Sequence record: MT133560.1 | Length of the DNA: 64,000 nt | Direction: 5' to 3' (one strand) | In this document: one piece after another, positions 1-60,003 of the stretch | How the letters are laid out: each line of letters begins with the position of its first letter | How positions within the stretch are numbered: the first letter of the stretch is position 1 | The notes under the pieces: generated by a model | What the model saw: only the letters and a program-made list of their open reading frames with translations | Told to the model about the DNA's origin: nothing | Databases searched by the model: none | Translations under genes and position numbers: made by a program

Positions 1-1560
1 GAGGTCACTGAGAACTCTATTGAACGTTTAAAAGAAGCAACTAATGATGGTCGTAATCTAGGTGTTGCAGCTGTACAGCAAATTGCAGCTGATGTGATCG
101 CACCACGTGCTCAAACTCAAGGCGAAGTCCCTATCGTCAATGGTTGGGGTGAACGCCGGTTTAGGTTCATGATGAAAGTATGGGAGAATAACCGTTTCTT
201 TGGTAATACCCGTACTTGCCGGATTCTATTTGGTTGCTCTGACCATTGCTCTATTAGTCCGCTTAGCAATAGTCTAGATCCTAACATGCGTATCTATTTT
301 AATAGTGAAACTGTTATTGTAGAGCGTCAACGACCAACTGAGTTTGGTGTGGTTAAACAAGCACATATCTTAGGTTCTAACCAGATCCTTGCACCCGTCG
401 ATATCATGAGTGATATTACTATCCCTCAGAACGGGTTTAGCATGTATACTGGAACTTCATCATATCTCCAACGGCCAGAAGATGTTTTCCAAATTCAGCA
501 AACGATGCAAGTAGCTAAACGCATTGAATCAACTGGACTACATCAAGGCGTATTTGACCGGATCATTGACCAACGCTCCAGTGTTGGTGAAGCAGGCACT
601 TTCCAATATTCAAATCGCCGTGATACTTCTCCTACTCGTTATCTATCTAGTACTCTTAATGCATGGCAGCATTCTGTTAAAGAAGCTGAGATGGCTAATA
701 ATGATAACGATAATATCTTTGGAGGTGTCTCTGATGAAGTGATGCTAGGCGATGCATCTGCTGTACTTCGAAATCAAGATATCCATTCCAATATGTTCAT
801 GCGCATTCTAAAAGAACGCTGCAATTACATGGAACGTGGCTTTGTTACACTGGCTGACCTACAACGAGTATTCCCTGAACTACTGGTTGATGGTGTAGTT
901 AAAGCTGGTATGGATAATGGTAATTCTCAACGCTTCGTTAACCGAGCAGAGCATTCCATGCATTGGGGTGGTGCAGATCATCACACTGTTGCAGCATCTC
1001 TACTTGCACAAGTAGTTCCAGCAATCATGATGGATAACTATTTCCGGGTAACCTCCTTTGCAATTACAAATGGACATGGAGCGAATAACTATCTATTCGA
1101 AATGCATCCAAATGGTACCAGGAGTATCATGGATGGAATTGATATGACTCCACAGATTAATGACTTTGAACGTCGTCTTATTACCGATGCGATTAACAGT
1201 ATCTCTTATGGTAACCAGATTCCGTTTAAAATTTCCATGCACTCTGACTTAGCTGGTGATACTGTTATTGATATCAGTCTAAATCATGAATCGGTAGAAC
1301 GATTTATTGCACCGACTTTCATTGATAGTCTGTTCAGTCCGGTTATTACTCGGGATGCTTCTGCACCAGCGATGATCTCCAATGACCTTACCTATCTTGT
1401 TAAGAATGTTATCCCCACTAAGACTCAACAAAACATTCTAAACAGTAGTGGTCAGCCGATTAACATGCAACCGTATCAGCACCCTGTGGCTCAACCTGCT
1501 CAAATCAATCCTAAATTTGGTGATAACAATGCCTACGATTTCTCTTTCCAAGTTCTATAG
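1..1560 (+). CDS. Non-virion RNAP promoter-specificity subunit (phiKZ gp68-like), 5'-truncated by window edge
   Basis: Frame 1 is open from base 1 (EVTENSIERLKE...) to TAG at 1558-1560, so the ORF-track start at 94 is not the real start. Identity from position upstream of the gp69/gp71-73/gp74 block as recalled for phiKZ. Confidence 0.7.
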   Translation, partial: EVTENSIERLKEATNDGRNLGVAAVQQIAADVIAPRAQTQGEVPIVNGWGERRFRFMMKVWENNRFFGNTRTCRILFGCSDHCSISPLSNSLDPNMRIYFNSETVIVERQRPTEFGVVKQAHILGSNQILAPVDIMSDITIPQNGFSMYTGTSSYLQRPEDVFQIQQTMQVAKRIESTGLHQGVFDRIIDQRSSVGEAGTFQYSNRRDTSPTRYLSSTLNAWQHSVKEAEMANNDNDNIFGGVSDEVMLGDASAVLRNQDIHSNMFMRILKERCNYMERGFVTLADLQRVFPELLVDGVVKAGMDNGNSQRFVNRAEHSMHWGGADHHTVAASLLAQVVPAIMMDNYFRVTSFAITNGHGANNYLFEMHPNGTRSIMDGIDMTPQINDFERRLITDAINSISYGNQIPFKISMHSDLAGDTVIDISLNHESVERFIAPTFIDSLFSPVITRDASAPAMISNDLTYLVKNVIPTKTQQNILNSSGQPINMQPYQHPVAQPAQINPKFGDNNAYDFSFQVL

Positions 1561-3376: not shown

Positions 3377-3496
3377 ATGAGATTGGTGATACCAGACATT
3401 GAAGTCTTACAAAAGGCTATATCTAAAAACAGCGCAAATAAGAAATATAGTAGTACTGCATCTTGTCTAATTAATGGTGATAAACAAAATGGCTGA
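3377..3496 (+). CDS. 39-aa leader ORF (MRLVIPDIEVLQKAISKNSANKKYSSTASCLINGDKQNG) coupled to the RNAP beta gene
   Basis: Perfect SD AGGAGGT immediately before ATG 3377; TGA at 3494-3496 lies just past the ATG (3489) of the RNAP gene. Confidence 0.55.
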   Translation: MRLVIPDIEVLQKAISKNSANKKYSSTASCLINGDKQNG

Positions 3497-4667
3497 ACTA
3501 GGTAAACGTGAAATTGATCTAACCCTATTAGGGCATACTGGTTTAGATCCTTGGTATGGCACTACCTCATCTGCACGGGGTGCTATGTTTGTAACACACA
3601 TTGGACAGGCACCGGAAGTAAATGGAAATGAATCGCGTTATTTCCTAACGGGTGCTGAATTAGAGTATGCCAAGTATACACATGATGTTCGTTTTCCTGA
3701 GGATTGTCGTGTACTACACGTTCTTAGAAAATATCCAACGGGTATTGGTAAAGACAGTATCAGATCTAACCCGGTAACAACTATTATCTACGAAAACTAT
3801 TTTGACAAATATAAAACCATTGGTGTCTTACATGTTCCCGAATACATGAGCCATCACCAAGACTTTGGTTATGAACTTGTAAAGAATCGAGAAGTGTGGG
3901 AAACCATTGCCCCAAATGAAATGTTCTCTAAAGACACAGTAATTGCACAGTCTGGTGCAGTTAAGAAAGATGGTACTTTAGGGATGGGTGTTAATGCTAA
4001 TGTTGTATTCCTATCTGCCGCAGGTACCATTGAAGATGGATTCGTAGCTAATAAGAATTTCCTTAAAAGGATGATGCCAACTAGTTATAGCACGGCTGTA
4101 GCTAATGCTGGTAGGAAAGCTTTCTTCTTAAACATGTATGGCGATGATAAGGTCTATAAACCATTCCCGGACATTGGCGATGTTATCCGACCAGATGGTG
4201 TAATCTTCGCCATCCGTGACCATGATGATGATCTAGCTCCTGCCGAGATGACTCCTAGGGCACTTCGTACACTAGATAGAACTTTCGATAGAGCTGTTAT
4301 TGGCACACCTGGTGCGAAGGTTATTGATATTGATATTTGGCGTGATGAGCGTGTAAATCCATCCCCTACTCCAACAGGAATGGATGCACAACTAGTTAAA
4401 TATCATACTCATCTTAGCAGTTATTATCGAGAACTATTAAAGATCTATCGTGGTCTATTAGCACGTCGTAAAGATGATCTACATATCACTGAGGAATTTG
4501 AACGTCTTATTGTAACTGCACAGATGTTCCTACCTCAACCTGATAATGTCCGTAAACTATCTCGATTCTATCGACTAGACCCACTAGATGAATGGCGAGT
4601 CGAAGTAACTTACAAAGCCCAAAAGATGCCTGCTGGTGCTTTCAAGATGACTGATTTTCATGGTGGT
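3489..4667 (+). CDS. Non-virion RNAP beta subunit C-terminal half (gp71-73), exon 1
   Basis: Beta motifs GTIEDGFV and FKMTDFHGG. The frame stops at 4671-4673 in the middle of the GRHGNKG-type motif, which resumes at 4975. Confidence 0.92.
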
Positions 4668-4974
4668 AATTAATATCCATCCATCTCTCAGGAATGGATA
4701 TTGTCAAATTGCCTGCTTGATCTCGAAAGAGTCAAGTAAATCCTCTCTAATTGCTGGGACATCTCAATGAGACAATCAGCAGCGAAGCTTTCCAGAAATG
4801 GATTGAACGTTCAACGACTATCCGGTTACGCGGAGTACACTCAAGCGAGTGGAAATGGGAGGGACCTGACCACCTAGGGTGAAGGTTAAGATATAGTCTG
4901 GTCTGCATGGTGACATGCAGCTGCCTGCAATACGAGAGGCGGGGTAAGCGTAGCGAACTTACCTGAACATAACG
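4668..4974 (+). mobile_element. Group I self-splicing intron (IA-type), 307 nt, no endonuclease ORF
   Basis: P/Q/R/S cores AATTGCTGGG, AATCAGCAG, GTTCAACGACTA, AAGATATAGTCTG; P7 GACTA/TAGTC; P1 GGT|AATT pairs with AATTGCC (4707-4713) giving U-G at 4667; terminal G at 4974; P9 CATG-GTGA-CATG; splicing restores HGG|KGVI in frame. Confidence 0.93.
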
Positions 4975-5898
4975 AAGGGCGTCATCTGTAAGGTAATGGA
5001 AGATGAAGATATGCCTATTGACGAAAATGGTAATAGGGCAGATCTAATTATCTTTGGTGGTTCAACCATGCGTCGTTCAAATTATGGTCGAATTTATGAA
5101 CATGGTTTTGGCGCAGCTGCACGAGATCTAGCTCAACGCCTACGCGTTGAAGCTGGACTAGATCGACATGCCAAACCAACCCAGCAACAACTAAATAGTG
5201 TAATGGGTAATACGCAATGGGTTGATTATGCATTTAAAGAACTATTAGGTTTCTATGAGATCATTGCTCCAACAATGCATAGTAAAATGATGGAACACCC
5301 AAATCCAGCAGAACATGTTAAAACAGTACTAATGGATGGATTCCCATATATCTACGCACCAGTTGATGATCCAGTGGATCTAATGGCAGCAGTCAACAAA
5401 TTAATTAATAGCGATAAGTATCGACCACACTATGGGAAGGTATCTTATCGAGATCAAGCTGGTAAGTGGGTAACAACTAAAGATAATGTCTTAATGGGTC
5501 CACTTTACATGATGCTACTAGAAAAGATTGGTGAAGACTGGTCAGCAGCAGCATCTGTAAAAACACAACCATTTGGTCTACCTTCTAAGTTAAACAATGC
5601 TGATAGGGCTAGCACACCTGGTCGAGAAACAGCTATCCGGTCATTCGGTGAATCTGAAACTCGGTCATATAACTGTACAGTTGGTCCAGGTCCGACTGCT
5701 GAAATCTTAGACCAAACTAATAACCCATTGGCGCATGCTGCGGTTATCGAGTCTTGGCTAACAGCAGAAAAACCTTCATCTGTACCAGTTGCAGTTGATC
5801 GTGAAAAGATTCCATTTGGTGGATCTCGCCCAGTAGCTATGTTTGATCACCTGCTTGAATGTAGTGGTATTGCATTAGAATATGCCCCTGATCATTGA
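4975..5898 (+). CDS. Non-virion RNAP beta subunit C-terminal half (gp71-73), exon 2; spliced product 700 aa
   Basis: KGVICKVMEDEDMP, NGNRADLII..STMRRSNYGRIYE, GPLYMMLLEK and RSFGESE match beta C-terminal motifs. Confidence 0.92.
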   Translation, partial: KGVICKVMEDEDMPIDENGNRADLIIFGGSTMRRSNYGRIYEHGFGAAARDLAQRLRVEAGLDRHAKPTQQQLNSVMGNTQWVDYAFKELLGFYEIIAPTMHSKMMEHPNPAEHVKTVLMDGFPYIYAPVDDPVDLMAAVNKLINSDKYRPHYGKVSYRDQAGKWVTTKDNVLMGPLYMMLLEKIGEDWSAAASVKTQPFGLPSKLNNADRASTPGRETAIRSFGESETRSYNCTVGPGPTAEILDQTNNPLAHAAVIESWLTAEKPSSVPVAVDREKIPFGGSRPVAMFDHLLECSGIALEYAPDH

Positions 5899-9631: not shown

Positions 9632-9649
9632 TTTTAAACAGTATATCAC
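9632..9649 (+). promoter_or_regulatory. Early promoter candidate
   Basis: TTTTAAACAGTATATCAC, near-identical to the elements at 46161 and 47348. Confidence 0.7.
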
Positions 9650-9678
9650 AAATGTGATAAAACTATAGGGTATTTACA

Positions 9679-30414: not shown

Positions 30415-30945
30415 ATGCCAGCAACTAATGCTGTACGCCCATTTGGTCGTAATTACTCAGGTGGTCAACAACAGGCCATTTCACGGTTCACTGCTCGTCC
30501 CGGTGATCCTCAAGTTGAAGAACTATATCTTATCTTTACCAACTTTCCTGCACAAACTGCATATTGGGAATTCCATAAGAAAGTTCTAGCTTGTGCTATT
30601 CGTCTTTTTAGCGGAAACTATAATTGGTTTATTCTACAGGACAATAATAGTAATATTGATAGTTATAATTATCAATTCCTATTAGATACTGTTCGATACA
30701 TTGCTACGGGTCATCGACGTATTTCAATTACCCAATGGCCAATGTTACTAGCTACTGAACCAGATGCTGGTGCACAACTCATTGAACCGCGCGCTGAAAT
30801 TGCTACTCTCTTTAATGAGTTAAAATTAGATCTAGATACCGTTTCAATGATCCAGAATTGGGTTAAACACAAAAACGGTATGAATGATCTAATGTATACC
30901 CTACATCTACTATTTGGATCTGTAGAAGTAATAGATAAGGACTGA
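30415..30945 (+). CDS. Head protein (gp91-like)
   Basis: GGAGG SD favours ATG 30415 over 30400. Confidence 0.65.
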   Translation: MPATNAVRPFGRNYSGGQQQAISRFTARPGDPQVEELYLIFTNFPAQTAYWEFHKKVLACAIRLFSGNYNWFILQDNNSNIDSYNYQFLLDTVRYIATGHRRISITQWPMLLATEPDAGAQLIEPRAEIATLFNELKLDLDTVSMIQNWVKHKNGMNDLMYTLHLLFGSVEVIDKD

Positions 30946-45742: not shown

Positions 45743-46165
45743 ATGGAACAACTATTTATACGAGTTGATGTGAGGTGGTCACAACAATTCTTTTCTGAAT
45801 TAAAACAATACTTTAATTATACCGCAAAAGATGAAGATGATCTTAACTACTTGATCATTCTTTATATTAAAGAACGACATAATTTCTTTTGGACATGTGT
45901 TCCAGATAGATACAATGATGTAATGTGTAGTTTCTATAAATCAATTTGTGGTTATCCAATAAATCCTAATATCATTGCAAATAGATTTGATCAACTCTAT
46001 CGTGAGATTATGAATAGCTTATTACAAATAAAAGGTATTATCAAAGATATAGTTGCTGTTAAAACAAAAGAAGGGGATATCGAGGGATTCATTATACATT
46101 CTGAATCACTACCTAGGTCCTATCCAAGACCTACTAATTGGAAAGGTGTATTTGAAAGATCTTAA
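45743..46165 (+). CDS. Hypothetical protein
   Basis: AGGTG SD before ATG 45743 (MEQLFIRV). Confidence 0.75.
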   Translation: MEQLFIRVDVRWSQQFFSELKQYFNYTAKDEDDLNYLIILYIKERHNFFWTCVPDRYNDVMCSFYKSICGYPINPNIIANRFDQLYREIMNSLLQIKGIIKDIVAVKTKEGDIEGFIIHSESLPRSYPRPTNWKGVFERS

Positions 46166-46177
46166 ACAGTATATTAC
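46161..46177 (+). promoter_or_regulatory. Early promoter
   Basis: CTTAAACAG-TATATTAC, an exact phiKZ early motif. Confidence 0.75.
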
Positions 46178-46204
46178 ACATATGAACTAATGTGGAGTAT
46201 ATAC

Positions 46205-47347: not shown

Positions 47348-47365
47348 TTTTAAACAGTATATTAC
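47348..47365 (+). promoter_or_regulatory. Early promoter
   Basis: TTTTAAACAG-TATATTAC. Confidence 0.75.
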
Positions 47366-47423
47366 ATTTGTGACAATACTGTAAACATTATCATACAACT
47401 TAATGTAAATAGGTGGAAATAAA

Positions 47424-53218: not shown

Positions 53219-53494
53219 ATGGGTGAATATACACAGAATGGTATTCGTCATTTTCGTCCGGATGATACCGAAGATACCTTTTATATCTTGGGTGATTGTT
53301 ATGTAGCCAATACTATCGCCGATATTATCGAGATGGCAACTAAGAAATGGGGTGATGGTATTACTCTTGATATGATTAATATCAGTACTGAATATATTCA
53401 TACAAGTTGTCTAGGGTATGATGAGTACGACCCCAGCGATTACAGTAATTATTTATGCATCTCTCGTGTTAGGGAAACATCGCTGGTTAAATAA
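53219..53494 (+). CDS. Hypothetical phage protein
   Basis: 91 aa; EYIHTSCLGYDEYDPSDY. Confidence 0.8.
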   Translation: MGEYTQNGIRHFRPDDTEDTFYILGDCYVANTIADIIEMATKKWGDGITLDMINISTEYIHTSCLGYDEYDPSDYSNYLCISRVRETSLVK

Positions 53495-53502
53495 ATTAAC
53501 GA

Positions 53503-53535
53503 CATAAGCCCTCTCCTTCGGGAGAGGGCATTTAT
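53503..53535 (+). terminator. Terminator hairpin with UUCG loop
   Basis: CATAA-GCCCTCTCC-TTCG-GGAGAGGGC-ATTTATT. Confidence 0.8.
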
Positions 53536-53564
53536 TCAGTTAAACTTTTTAAGAATAAAAGAAT

Positions 53565-53592
53565 TAGCCCTACTGTTACAGCAGTAGGGCTA
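53565..53592. terminator. 11-bp hairpin
   Basis: TAGCCCTACTG-TTACAG-CAGTAGGGCTA. Confidence 0.55.
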
Positions 53593-53660
53593 TATGCCGT
53601 TGAGTAAAAAATACTCAACATTTTCGCCCAAGTGGGCTTGGATTAACAAGAGGAACAATC

Positions 53661-53966
53661 ATGTTAATTCCAGTTACCGCTAACAATGTTAGCCCTGACC
53701 TGCACAGAATGCAGGAAGTAGGTTTCTTTTTCAAGAGACCCGATGGATCAACCCATAGCATGTCGGTTGCGAAAACGCAAGCCGATAATGTTATCCAATG
53801 TCGAAATCGTAGAGGTAACTTCATTGGTTATTGGGCTGGCCCTACAATAGGATACGTCAACAACGCAGGTTTAGCCGTATCCATCAACCCCTTCGACAAT
53901 TTCATAGTAACATACACTGACATGGATCAGAAGAAGTTCTATGTAACCGAAAGGAGAAGCCTATGA
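53661..53966 (+). CDS. Hypothetical protein (stand-alone unit)
   Basis: 101 aa, GAGGA SD, flanked by hairpins. Confidence 0.8.
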   Translation: MLIPVTANNVSPDLHRMQEVGFFFKRPDGSTHSMSVAKTQADNVIQCRNRRGNFIGYWAGPTIGYVNNAGLAVSINPFDNFIVTYTDMDQKKFYVTERRSL

Positions 53967-53973
53967 TAAACAA

Positions 53974-54016
53974 CCCCTCTCCTAAAGGAGAGGGACTTAT
54001 CTGAATTCTTTTTTTG
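53974..54016 (+). terminator. Intrinsic terminator
   Basis: CCCTCTCC-TAAA-GGAGAGGG followed by a T run. Confidence 0.75.
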
Positions 54017-54025
54017 TTTAAGTGA

Positions 54026-54500
54026 GAGCCGCCCGCTAAAGCGGCTCCCAAGTGGAGTTAAGTCTCCCGCTAAAGAGAAACTCCAGAATACATGGGGTAG
54101 CGACTCCTCATGTAGATATCCTAATTAATCTCTTTAGCTAGTAATCAATACCCGTTATCACTCGTTGATAATTGATTTGTTTATTAACTAATTTGACTTA
54201 ATCAGAATGATCAATACATATTGTTAATAATCTAGTATATTATTACCAGTATCATTGAGTAATACTGGTAATCAAATATTACTCATGAATCTTACCTAAT
54301 GTGGAACTGAGGAATCGGATCGCCCCGTAGGGGCTTTTATTTCATAATAAACTATACCGAAGGTATATCCTTATTCTAATAATAAACAATATTAGCATTA
54401 TTCTAATAGCGTTAGCTAATACATACTGTCTCCCTAAAAGGAGACACAGTATAGATTATATTTTTTTTTAATTAAAAATAATAAGTCTAGAGATAGACTT
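54026..54500. other. Hairpin-dense non-coding island (candidate ncRNA or replication origin)
   Basis: At least 8 inverted repeats, two with the identical loop CCGCTAAA; AT-rich core; no credible ORF. Confidence 0.55.
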
Positions 54501-54578
54501 TCTTTATGCCTTTAATACCTTCTAATTTGCTCTATAATCGATTTTATTCGTTATTCACTAGCATATTAGCCATACGAC

Positions 54579-54608
54579 ATAAAAGCCCTCCTATGAGGGC
54601 TTAAATGC
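54579..54608 (-). terminator. Terminator hairpin for the dnaB operon
   Basis: CATAAA-AGCCCTC-CTAT-GAGGGCT-TAAATG. Confidence 0.7.
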
Positions 54609-54609
54609 T

Positions 54610-54846
54610 TTATTTTTCATTAGTCGGATATAGGAGTACAATAGACTCTGCGCATACTTTAATAACTTGGATATTTTCACTGTCATTATTTTTTGATTGT
54701 TTATTTTTAACGCAGTATTCAAATTGTTGGGATTTGAGTTTATATACGTTATTGTTCTCTTCTCCCAGTATTCCTCCAAATACCAATCCTAGGATAAATA
54801 TTAATAAACCACCAATAAAGATAATATAAACATTACCATAGTACAT
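54610..54846 (-). CDS. Small membrane-anchored protein
   Basis: 78 aa; N-terminal TM (IIFIGGLLIFILGLVFGGILG). Confidence 0.75.
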   Translation of the reverse strand: MYYGNVYIIFIGGLLIFILGLVFGGILGEENNNVYKLKSQQFEYCVKNKQSKNNDSENIQVIKVCAESIVLLYPTNEK

Positions 54847-56907: not shown

Positions 56908-56911
56908 TATG
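56908..56911 (+). promoter_or_regulatory. Late (nvRNAP) promoter TATG candidate upstream of gp119/gp120
   Basis: TATG 47 nt upstream of the gp119 ATG; phiKZ late promoters are defined by TATG; a short motif, so weak on its own. Confidence 0.45.
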
Positions 56912-59943: not shown

Positions 59944-59960
59944 TTTAAGATCTATATTAC
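59944..59960 (+). promoter_or_regulatory. Early promoter
   Basis: TTTAAGATC-TATATTAC. Confidence 0.7.
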
Positions 59961-60003
59961 AGTAATGATCATGATCTTCTAATTTAAAAATAGGTTAATC
60001 CAA

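Follow-up and report, generated by a model that had tools for sequence, protein, structure and literature searches.

'5'UTR-p40' of phiKZ-type jumbo phages re-read: an abundant folded RNA from a gene-free island beside the DnaB-like helicase operon

To our knowledge, phages encode few non-coding RNAs, and hardly any of these has a known function. One that has been described is '5'UTR-p40' of the jumbo phage phiKZ, which Gerovac et al. 2021 (mBio, PMC8545117) reported as a non-coding RNA of approximately 180 nt with an additional form of approximately 880 nt, present 10 min after infection and confirmed by northern blot. In gradients (Grad-seq), the same authors found that the RNA sediments broadly, including in fractions with RNA polymerase and 30S subunits, and that the long form occurs in heavier, mRNA-like fractions. 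Putzeys et al. 2024 (microLife, PMC10914365) detected the same RNA again by ONT-cappable-seq, with a length of 196 nt. A 2026 review says only that phiKZ expresses non-coding RNAs, with no function shown, and the phiKZ non-coding RNAs were not among the targets of a 2025 antisense-oligomer screen.

We analyzed a 64,000-nt stretch of DNA from sequence record MT133560.1 (the window), in which a position equals the phiKZ position minus approximately 60,706. The window belongs to a phiKZ-type jumbo phage: the 1.9 kb around the island described here are 100% identical to Pseudomonas phage fnug and 98.2% identical to phiKZ, and the whole 1.9-kb stretch is present in 47 Phikzvirus records. The plus-strand gp110-116 block ends to the left of the island. 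To the right, on the minus strand, lie PHIKZ117.3, PHIKZ117.4, and the gene for a divergent DnaB-like helicase (PF20307, E 1e-146), with plus-strand genes (gp119, major capsid protein) beyond this operon, so the island is a convergent junction. Its ORF-free part, 53967 to 54609, is 643 nt long, contains no ORF of at least 50 aa wholly inside, and is bordered by terminator hairpins at 53972-53997 and 54584-54601, in agreement with an initial annotation of the window that described an island without a credible gene between two terminators. The two borders are as follows.

53972 to 53997, plus strand: left border, a GC-rich terminator hairpin with a T-run after it (sequence, repeat finder, terminator scan)
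54576 to 54605, minus strand: right border, formed by the terminator of the DnaB-like helicase operon (a hairpin and TTTTATGTCG), with an RNA 3' end at 54576

For comparison among relatives, we collected 47 full-length Phikzvirus copies of the island, all at least 96% identical, and aligned 14 of them; island identity within the genus is 96 to 100%. In four of the 14 aligned relatives (ANB1, SL2, T2P, and OMKO1), a 196-nt deletion, 54636 to 54831, takes out most of PHIKZ117.3, which indicates that this small membrane-like protein is dispensable. The helicase gene itself is annotated in two pieces in PhiPA3 (L018 3001-6326), with approximately 1.8 kb and a putative endonuclease gene between them, an interruption that looks like an intron- or intein-type insertion.

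The island is rich in predicted stems. Every stem listed in the initial annotation was present in the sequence and recovered by a repeat finder.

54026 to 54047: stem of 7 bp, extendable to 54023-54050
54054 to 54084: stem
54089 to 54114: stem
54155 to 54171: stem within a longer imperfect hairpin, 54142-54176
54242 to 54272: stem of 11 perfect bp within an imperfect 20-nt palindrome, 54233-54281
54322 to 54334: stem
54353 to 54367: stem
54423 to 54452: stem
54483 to 54500: stem with a GAGA loop

The first two stems do carry identical 8-nt loops, reading CCGCTAAA on the plus strand, which sit in a 15-nt direct repeat (54027-54041 and 54061-54075), and the direct repeat noted in the AT-rich core is also there, as a 16-nt repeat of TTATTCTAATA. 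The 9-mer CCGCTAAAG occurs twice in the 278,899-bp fnug genome, both times in the island. Elsewhere in the window, CCGCTAAA occurs twice in the capsid gene and once in another place, giving a total of five matches against 1.2 expected; this total was equalled in 1 of 100 shuffles, and the three matches outside the island are close to chance expectation. We considered pairing of the CCGCTAAA loops with capsid mRNA and dropped it, given that the copies outside the island are at chance level and CCGCTAAAG is confined to the island. Both strands of the 643-nt island are far more stably folded than dinucleotide shuffles (plus, z = -7.1; minus, z = -7.9), and terminator-like sites are enriched nine-fold (7 found, 0.8 expected). 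Rfam at gathering threshold returned no match in the island and only one in the whole window, a group I intron at 4692-4920 (plus strand; RF00028, 84 bits, E 6e-20); because this intron separates ORFs 3474-4673 and 4996-5898, the two are probably exons of one gene. A relaxed Rfam search of 53450-54700 gave chance-level matches only (E 0.4 to 5), and in three genomes searched for island paralogues, the only matches were the palindrome to itself and generic terminator hairpins.

The left part of the island is already known. The northern probe that Gerovac 2021 (PMC8545117) used for '5UTR PHIKZ_p40', JVO-18831, has a single exact match, at 54151-54179, and its sequence is in plus-strand sense, therefore the probe detects a minus-strand RNA; PHIKZ_p40 is PHIKZ117.2 in the annotation. 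This part of the island thus holds no new object, and the identity of its RNA has been published. The initial annotation proposed a structured non-coding RNA, which is right for the left third of the island, except that this RNA had already been described and is read from the minus strand, where its loops read UUUAGCGG.

We read the island as a transcription unit with an upstream spacer that makes an abundant regulatory or antisense RNA, which stands alone and has an attenuator-like 5' domain, rather than an mRNA leader, and we give this reading a probability of roughly 75%. In such a unit, a promoter around the palindrome at 54233-54281 would fire leftwards, on the minus strand, early in infection, and its product would be the very abundant, highly folded '5'UTR-p40', of approximately 190 to 220 nt, carrying in its 3' portion two hairpins with the repeated motif UUUAGCGG. 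Most transcripts would stop at these hairpins, either by premature termination or by trimming to stable stems, while an abundant remainder would run approximately 0.5 kb further, to a hairpin-TTATGTC terminator at 53501, as an extension antisense to a conserved plus-strand ORF at 53661-53966. The two RNA features are given here with the evidence that defines them.

54016 to 54239, minus strand: body of the abundant small RNA, '5'UTR-p40' (probe match, nanopore depth, poly(T), fold with z = -5.5)
53501 to 53530, minus strand: hairpin with a TTATGTC tail, 3' end of the long minus-strand transcript (adapter remnant, depth drop, terminator scan)

The RNA data were public runs in the form of Logan contigs, which do not show strand, level, or ends directly; strand was called from adapter remnants, poly(T) remnants, and the published probe. 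Transcription of the island, which the initial annotation had proposed to check by RNA-seq with strand assignment, proved abundant and from the minus strand. Across runs, island depth was 4 to 90 times that of neighboring operons. In run X1, contigs covering 53501-53949 and 53920-54605 had depths of 6396 and 3345, whereas the operon upstream had 72 and the helicase operon 801, an excess too large to come from contaminating DNA; at 53501, contig depth falls from 6396 to 72. One contig in run X6, from a second study, spans 53501-54466. In nanopore cDNA run X11, from a third study, depth was highest, at 30605, in 54076-54239 and was 0 in 54240-54403. A raw-read run, X24, contained no phage reads.

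An identical Illumina read-2 adapter remnant lies directly before 53501 (run X1) and directly before 54576 (runs X1 and X6). Because 54576 must be the 3' end of the minus-strand helicase operon, the same remnant at 53501 places a minus-strand 3' end there too, and both sites have a minus-strand hairpin followed by TTATGTC. The hairpin at 53501-53530, which shares this tail motif with the helicase-operon terminator, also resembles a plus-strand terminator of the gp116 operon. Run X11 has a poly(T) loose end before 54009, indicating the tail of a minus-strand RNA. We regard this run as trustworthy for ends, since one of its strand-switch primer remnants, at 56911 (the G of TATG), falls exactly at the published start of the late promoter P119L (Yakunina 2015). 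Upstream of gp119, such remnants mark two plus-strand 5' ends, 56911 and approximately 56597, each at the G of a TATG motif; the second site falls within the 5' part of the helicase gene, in antisense orientation.

The 5' end of the small RNA lies on the minus strand between 54213 and 54239, an approximate placement, and its 3' ends lie at approximately 54050 and at 54016-54022. Depth and the sharp 5' edge at or below 54239 are compatible with an RNA of 170 to 225 nt, a range rather than a length because contigs give no exact ends. Candidate starts are A54238, which is 22 nt downstream of a TACT, and G54217, the G of a TATG, which has another TACT approximately 20 nt upstream, preceded by an A-rich repeat. 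The published 196 nt would end at 54022, just past the second of the two motif hairpins, if counted from G54217, and at 54043, between the two hairpins, if counted from A54238. A minus-strand start further upstream, inside the conserved module described below (approximately 54337-54343), would fit the approximately 880-nt band; we rejected it as the main start, given a nanopore depth of zero at that place. The following element lies at the RNA start or just upstream of it.

54233 to 54281: imperfect 20-nt palindrome with 11 perfect bp (54242-54252 with 54262-54272)

This palindrome is the presumed promoter or operator region of the small RNA. TACT is a feature of middle promoters (Wicke 2020), and the start region may, from its sequence, belong to the middle class or to another. 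The canonical early-promoter core of phiKZ, TTTAAACAGTATATTACA, has no match in the island; we derived this core in the present analysis, and the class assignment built on it is an inferred one. This motif, which recurs at intergenic positions, probably represents the early-promoter core of phiKZ: allowing up to three mismatches, the fnug genome has 13 matches (12 forward and one reverse), and the window has three, at 9633-9650, 46161-46178, and 47349-47366 (plus strand), besides a weaker one at 59944-59961. A sigma-70 scan found two sites against six expected, i.e., no enrichment. Within the palindrome, the 9-nt spacer 54253-54261 is exactly reverse-complemented in five of the 14 relatives (FBPa36, 30-1, PA7, Wadjak 2, and SL2), with a distribution independent of neighboring SNPs, a small flip-flop inversion at the presumed promoter.

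Down to 53501, the long RNA would measure 717 to 738 nt, somewhat less than the published estimate of approximately 880 nt. What it covers is annotated in conflicting ways: the phiKZ RefSeq record places genes on the minus strand (53615-53923), namely PHIKZ117.1 (p39, 69 aa) and PHIKZ117.2 (p40, 31 aa), whereas most other records call one ORF on the plus strand.

53661 to 53966, plus strand: ORF of 101 aa (fnug_143, PHROG 25431) with an AAGAGGA ribosome-binding site, covered in antisense by the long minus-strand RNA

In the published interpretation, the RNA would be a cis-acting 5' leader of the p40-p39 mRNA, in which termination at the second stem-loop tunes both proteins and the short RNA is a by-product. 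The long form was indeed published from mRNA-like gradient fractions (Gerovac 2021, PMC8545117), Putzeys 2024 (PMC10914365) lists many 5'UTR premature-termination RNAs in phiKZ, and p40 is intact in all 14 aligned relatives, compatible with a small protein. However, p40 has accumulated five non-synonymous and two synonymous changes, and p39 is interrupted by stop codons in three of the 14 relatives (ANB1, Wadjak 1, and 124.01), which arose by two independent substitutions, one of them synonymous in the plus-strand ORF. No ribosome-binding site (Shine-Dalgarno) precedes p39 or p40 in the sequence, whereas the opposite 101-aa ORF, the one called by most annotators, has the strong AAGAGGA and is intact in 14 of 14 relatives. 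Judged by these patterns, the minus-strand ORFs p39 and p40 look spurious. Given the p39 interruptions, the pattern of changes in p40, the lack of ribosome-binding sites, and the always intact plus-strand ORF with its own, it seems more probable that the long RNA is not an mRNA but an abundant transcript antisense to the plus-strand gene, and '5'UTR' would then be a misnomer. Overall, we consider the leader explanation unlikely.

The stand-alone RNA that we favor can form, by prediction, the following three hairpins.

54023 to 54050, minus strand: hairpin B, with the second UUUAGCGG copy, strongest stem of the RNA (-20 kcal/mol)
54054 to 54084, minus strand: hairpin A, with the first UUUAGCGG copy (-10.7 kcal/mol), competing with the helix 54069-54078 / 54129-54138
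54142 to 54176, minus strand: imperfect hairpin that contains most of the published northern-probe site

The minus-strand RNA from 54238 to 54016 has a minimum free energy (MFE) of -68.4 kcal/mol (z = -5.5 for the near-identical 54239-54016), and the MFE fold consists of a long 5' hairpin, the probe hairpin, a long-range helix, and hairpin B. The long-range helix joins 54129-54138 to 54069-54078 in 10 of 10 perfect base pairs and takes in most of the first motif copy. When this helix is blocked, the best fold reaches only -59.7 kcal/mol, a cost of 8.7, and only then does hairpin A form. The segment 54129-54138 is complementary to both motif copies, with 10 bp to copy 1 and 7 bp to copy 2, and this shared upstream complement offers a structural reason for the duplication of the motif. 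In the models, the 10-nt repeat most plausibly offers 54129-54138 a choice of two partners to pair with, rather than loops for a protein to bind, which hints at an attenuator-like structural switch; the great stability of hairpin B keeps that switch hypothetical.

Hairpin B is a candidate for either a premature terminator or a 3' protective hairpin. The TTAT tail that phiKZ terminators typically have is missing after both hairpin A and hairpin B; processing or exonucleolytic trimming is as likely as termination. As for covariation across relatives, another check proposed in the initial annotation, the 14 aligned copies vary too little for it to tell the competing pairings (hairpin A or the long-range helix) apart, and none of the eight substitutions in the RNA body is compensatory. 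These substitutions spare hairpins A and B except for one in the internal loop of hairpin A (54079); two weaken predicted pairs, and overall predicted stability is unchanged. RNA polymerase co-sedimentation had suggested a 6S-like RNA, which we rejected because the predicted fold is multi-hairpin rather than a rod with a central bubble and matches no 6S model.

The initial annotation took the repeated loops as a sign of protein sponging, i.e., a trans-acting RNA that titrates an RNA-binding protein through two identical hairpin loops. The uniqueness of the motif within the genome, its invariance across all 14 relatives, the great abundance of the RNA, and its broad sedimentation, which includes RNA polymerase and 30S fractions, would all suit a sponge. 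On the transcribed strand, however, the loops read UUUAGCGG, and both can close to UAGC tetraloops via U-G pairs; copy 1 is preferentially buried in the 10-bp helix of the MFE fold. Furthermore, two copies are few, the loops contain no RsmA-type GGA or other known protein-binding motif, and the Rfam searches returned no family. Sponging is therefore unsupported, and we rate it as distinctly improbable.

Beyond the genus, the RNA is not deeply conserved. At this junction, the sister genus Pawinskivirus carries an island of 417 nt from which the RNA body is entirely absent, and Psa21, a phage of a related genus, has only 54 nt there, so the small RNA is a Phikzvirus-specific insertion. The only part common to the Pawinskivirus island lies upstream of the RNA, in the right half, whose features are listed here.

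54330 to 54387: 58-nt module, present once per genome, made of a T-run, TAATAAAC, the palindrome ATACC-GAA-GGTAT, and TCCTTATTC
54322 to 54342, plus strand: 5-bp GC hairpin followed by TTTTATTT, in the shape of an intrinsic terminator; the stem sequences differ in three lineages and the shape is kept
54366 to 54408: 16-nt direct repeat (54366-54381 and 54393-54408, spacing 27), overlapping inverted CTAATA/TATTAG
54423 to 54500: hairpin 54423-54452, A/T-tract palindrome 54461-54481, and hairpin 54483-54500

The module is 90% identical in Pawinskivirus, in the same syntenic spot (L003 3501-3558), whereas the helicase proteins are 63% identical and no 58-nt stretch of the neighboring genes exceeds 86%. 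A third, more distant copy came from a single metagenome scan (L019, approximately 948-1005, minus strand), on a 1.2-kb contig that has a leftward ORF on one side of it and, on the other, a rightward gene homologous to that of a jumbo-phage virion protein; a search of IMG/VR with the module pattern found nothing. The three lineages share a layout of GC hairpin, TTTTATTT, TAATA, the palindrome ATACC-GAA-GGTAT, and TCCTTATTC, the last repeated 27 to 43 nt downstream; this second copy is imperfect here (CATTATTC) and reads TCCTTATTC in the two other lineages. The pair flanking the palindrome is T-A in fnug and A-T in PS119XW. Nanopore depth over the module is zero, indicating that it is not part of the abundant RNA, and it may act as a terminator-promoter cassette or as a protein-binding site, or else give rise to a short RNA that escaped the long-read protocol.

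The repeat at 54366-54408 is iteron-like in appearance, the T-run of the palindrome 54461-54481 varies in length among isolates, and the nanopore cDNA contigs cover none of 54423-54500, which is the AT-richest part. From this architecture, the poorly transcribed right half (54300 to 54575) could be a DNA-level control site, and by analogy possibly a replication origin, with its hairpins as single-strand loading sites, as the initial annotation suggested, or fired via the strong minus-strand promoter with the folded RNA as an R-loop primer, in the manner of T4 oriF or ColE1. We know of no origin that has been defined for any nucleus-forming jumbo phage, and we found no literature on a mapped phiKZ origin or initiator. 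The low GC content (24% over 54335-54560), the direct repeats 27 nt apart, the palindromes and A/T tract, the conservation of a single-copy module across genera, and the adjoining strong promoter and DnaB-like helicase gene are what one could cite for it. However, comparably AT-rich spots occur at 13.3, 34.5, and 48.3 kb, Psa21 makes do with its 54-nt junction, and the module of the metagenome relative lies beside a virion-protein gene, not a helicase gene. The skew check proposed in the initial annotation showed no switch: across the 64-kb window, cumulative GC skew rises to 54 kb, dips over the minus-strand genes (54 to 60 kb), and keeps rising beyond, and the dip is local, given that it coincides with the minus-strand operon. 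An origin at this site thus lacks support, and we regard it as very improbable.

Least probable, and already disfavored, is an inert spacer, a decayed remnant between convergent terminators with leftover hairpins and read-through noise for transcripts. It would fit the frequency of terminator-like hairpins in phiKZ, the variation within the island in T-run length and loop orientation, and the dispensability of gene 117.3 in four of 14 relatives. It is at odds, however, with a depth 4 to 90 times that of the flanking operons, a sharp 5' edge, a published discrete northern band, and a 58-nt module whose conservation exceeds that of every 58-nt stretch in the helicase and gp119 genes.

The RNA is among the most abundant early transcripts of phiKZ, a model jumbo phage and phage-therapy relative. 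Since the 'genes' behind it look spurious, it may be a stand-alone antisense or regulatory RNA instead of an mRNA leader; the upstream complement of its duplicated motif suggests a structural switch, and the 58-nt element next to it is kept almost unchanged across genera. Antisense status, switch, and element are all open to the antisense-oligomer and Cas13 tools that exist for phiKZ.

Among known systems, transcript-primed origins are represented by the R-loops of T4 oriF and oriG and by ColE1 RNA II. They combine a strong promoter, a folded and prematurely ending RNA, an AT-rich repeat region, and a replication gene, as does this locus, but the likeness is one of resemblance only, and no skew change was found here. 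Closer are the 5'UTR premature-termination RNAs of Pseudomonas phages (17 candidates in phiKZ, Putzeys 2024, PMC10914365; 11 sRNAs in 201phi2-1, PMC11512511), which have a promoter, a stable hairpin within 250 nt at which most transcripts end, and an abundant short form with a minor full-length form. The same pattern is found in the island; unlike in those RNAs, its 3' hairpins have no TTAT tail, and the read-through part appears to be non-coding and antisense to another gene. Closest is the phiKZ '5'UTR-p40' RNA itself, which matches in phage species, place, and strand, in early expression and strong folding, and in having a longer read-through form, and whose size (approximately 180 to 196 nt) is compatible with the range estimated here. 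The two are the same object, with no essential difference, and to the published description we add a strand-aware anatomy of the RNA that includes the repeated motif and its upstream complement, doubt about the downstream 'gene' (p39/p40), and a comparison of the island across relatives with its conserved module.
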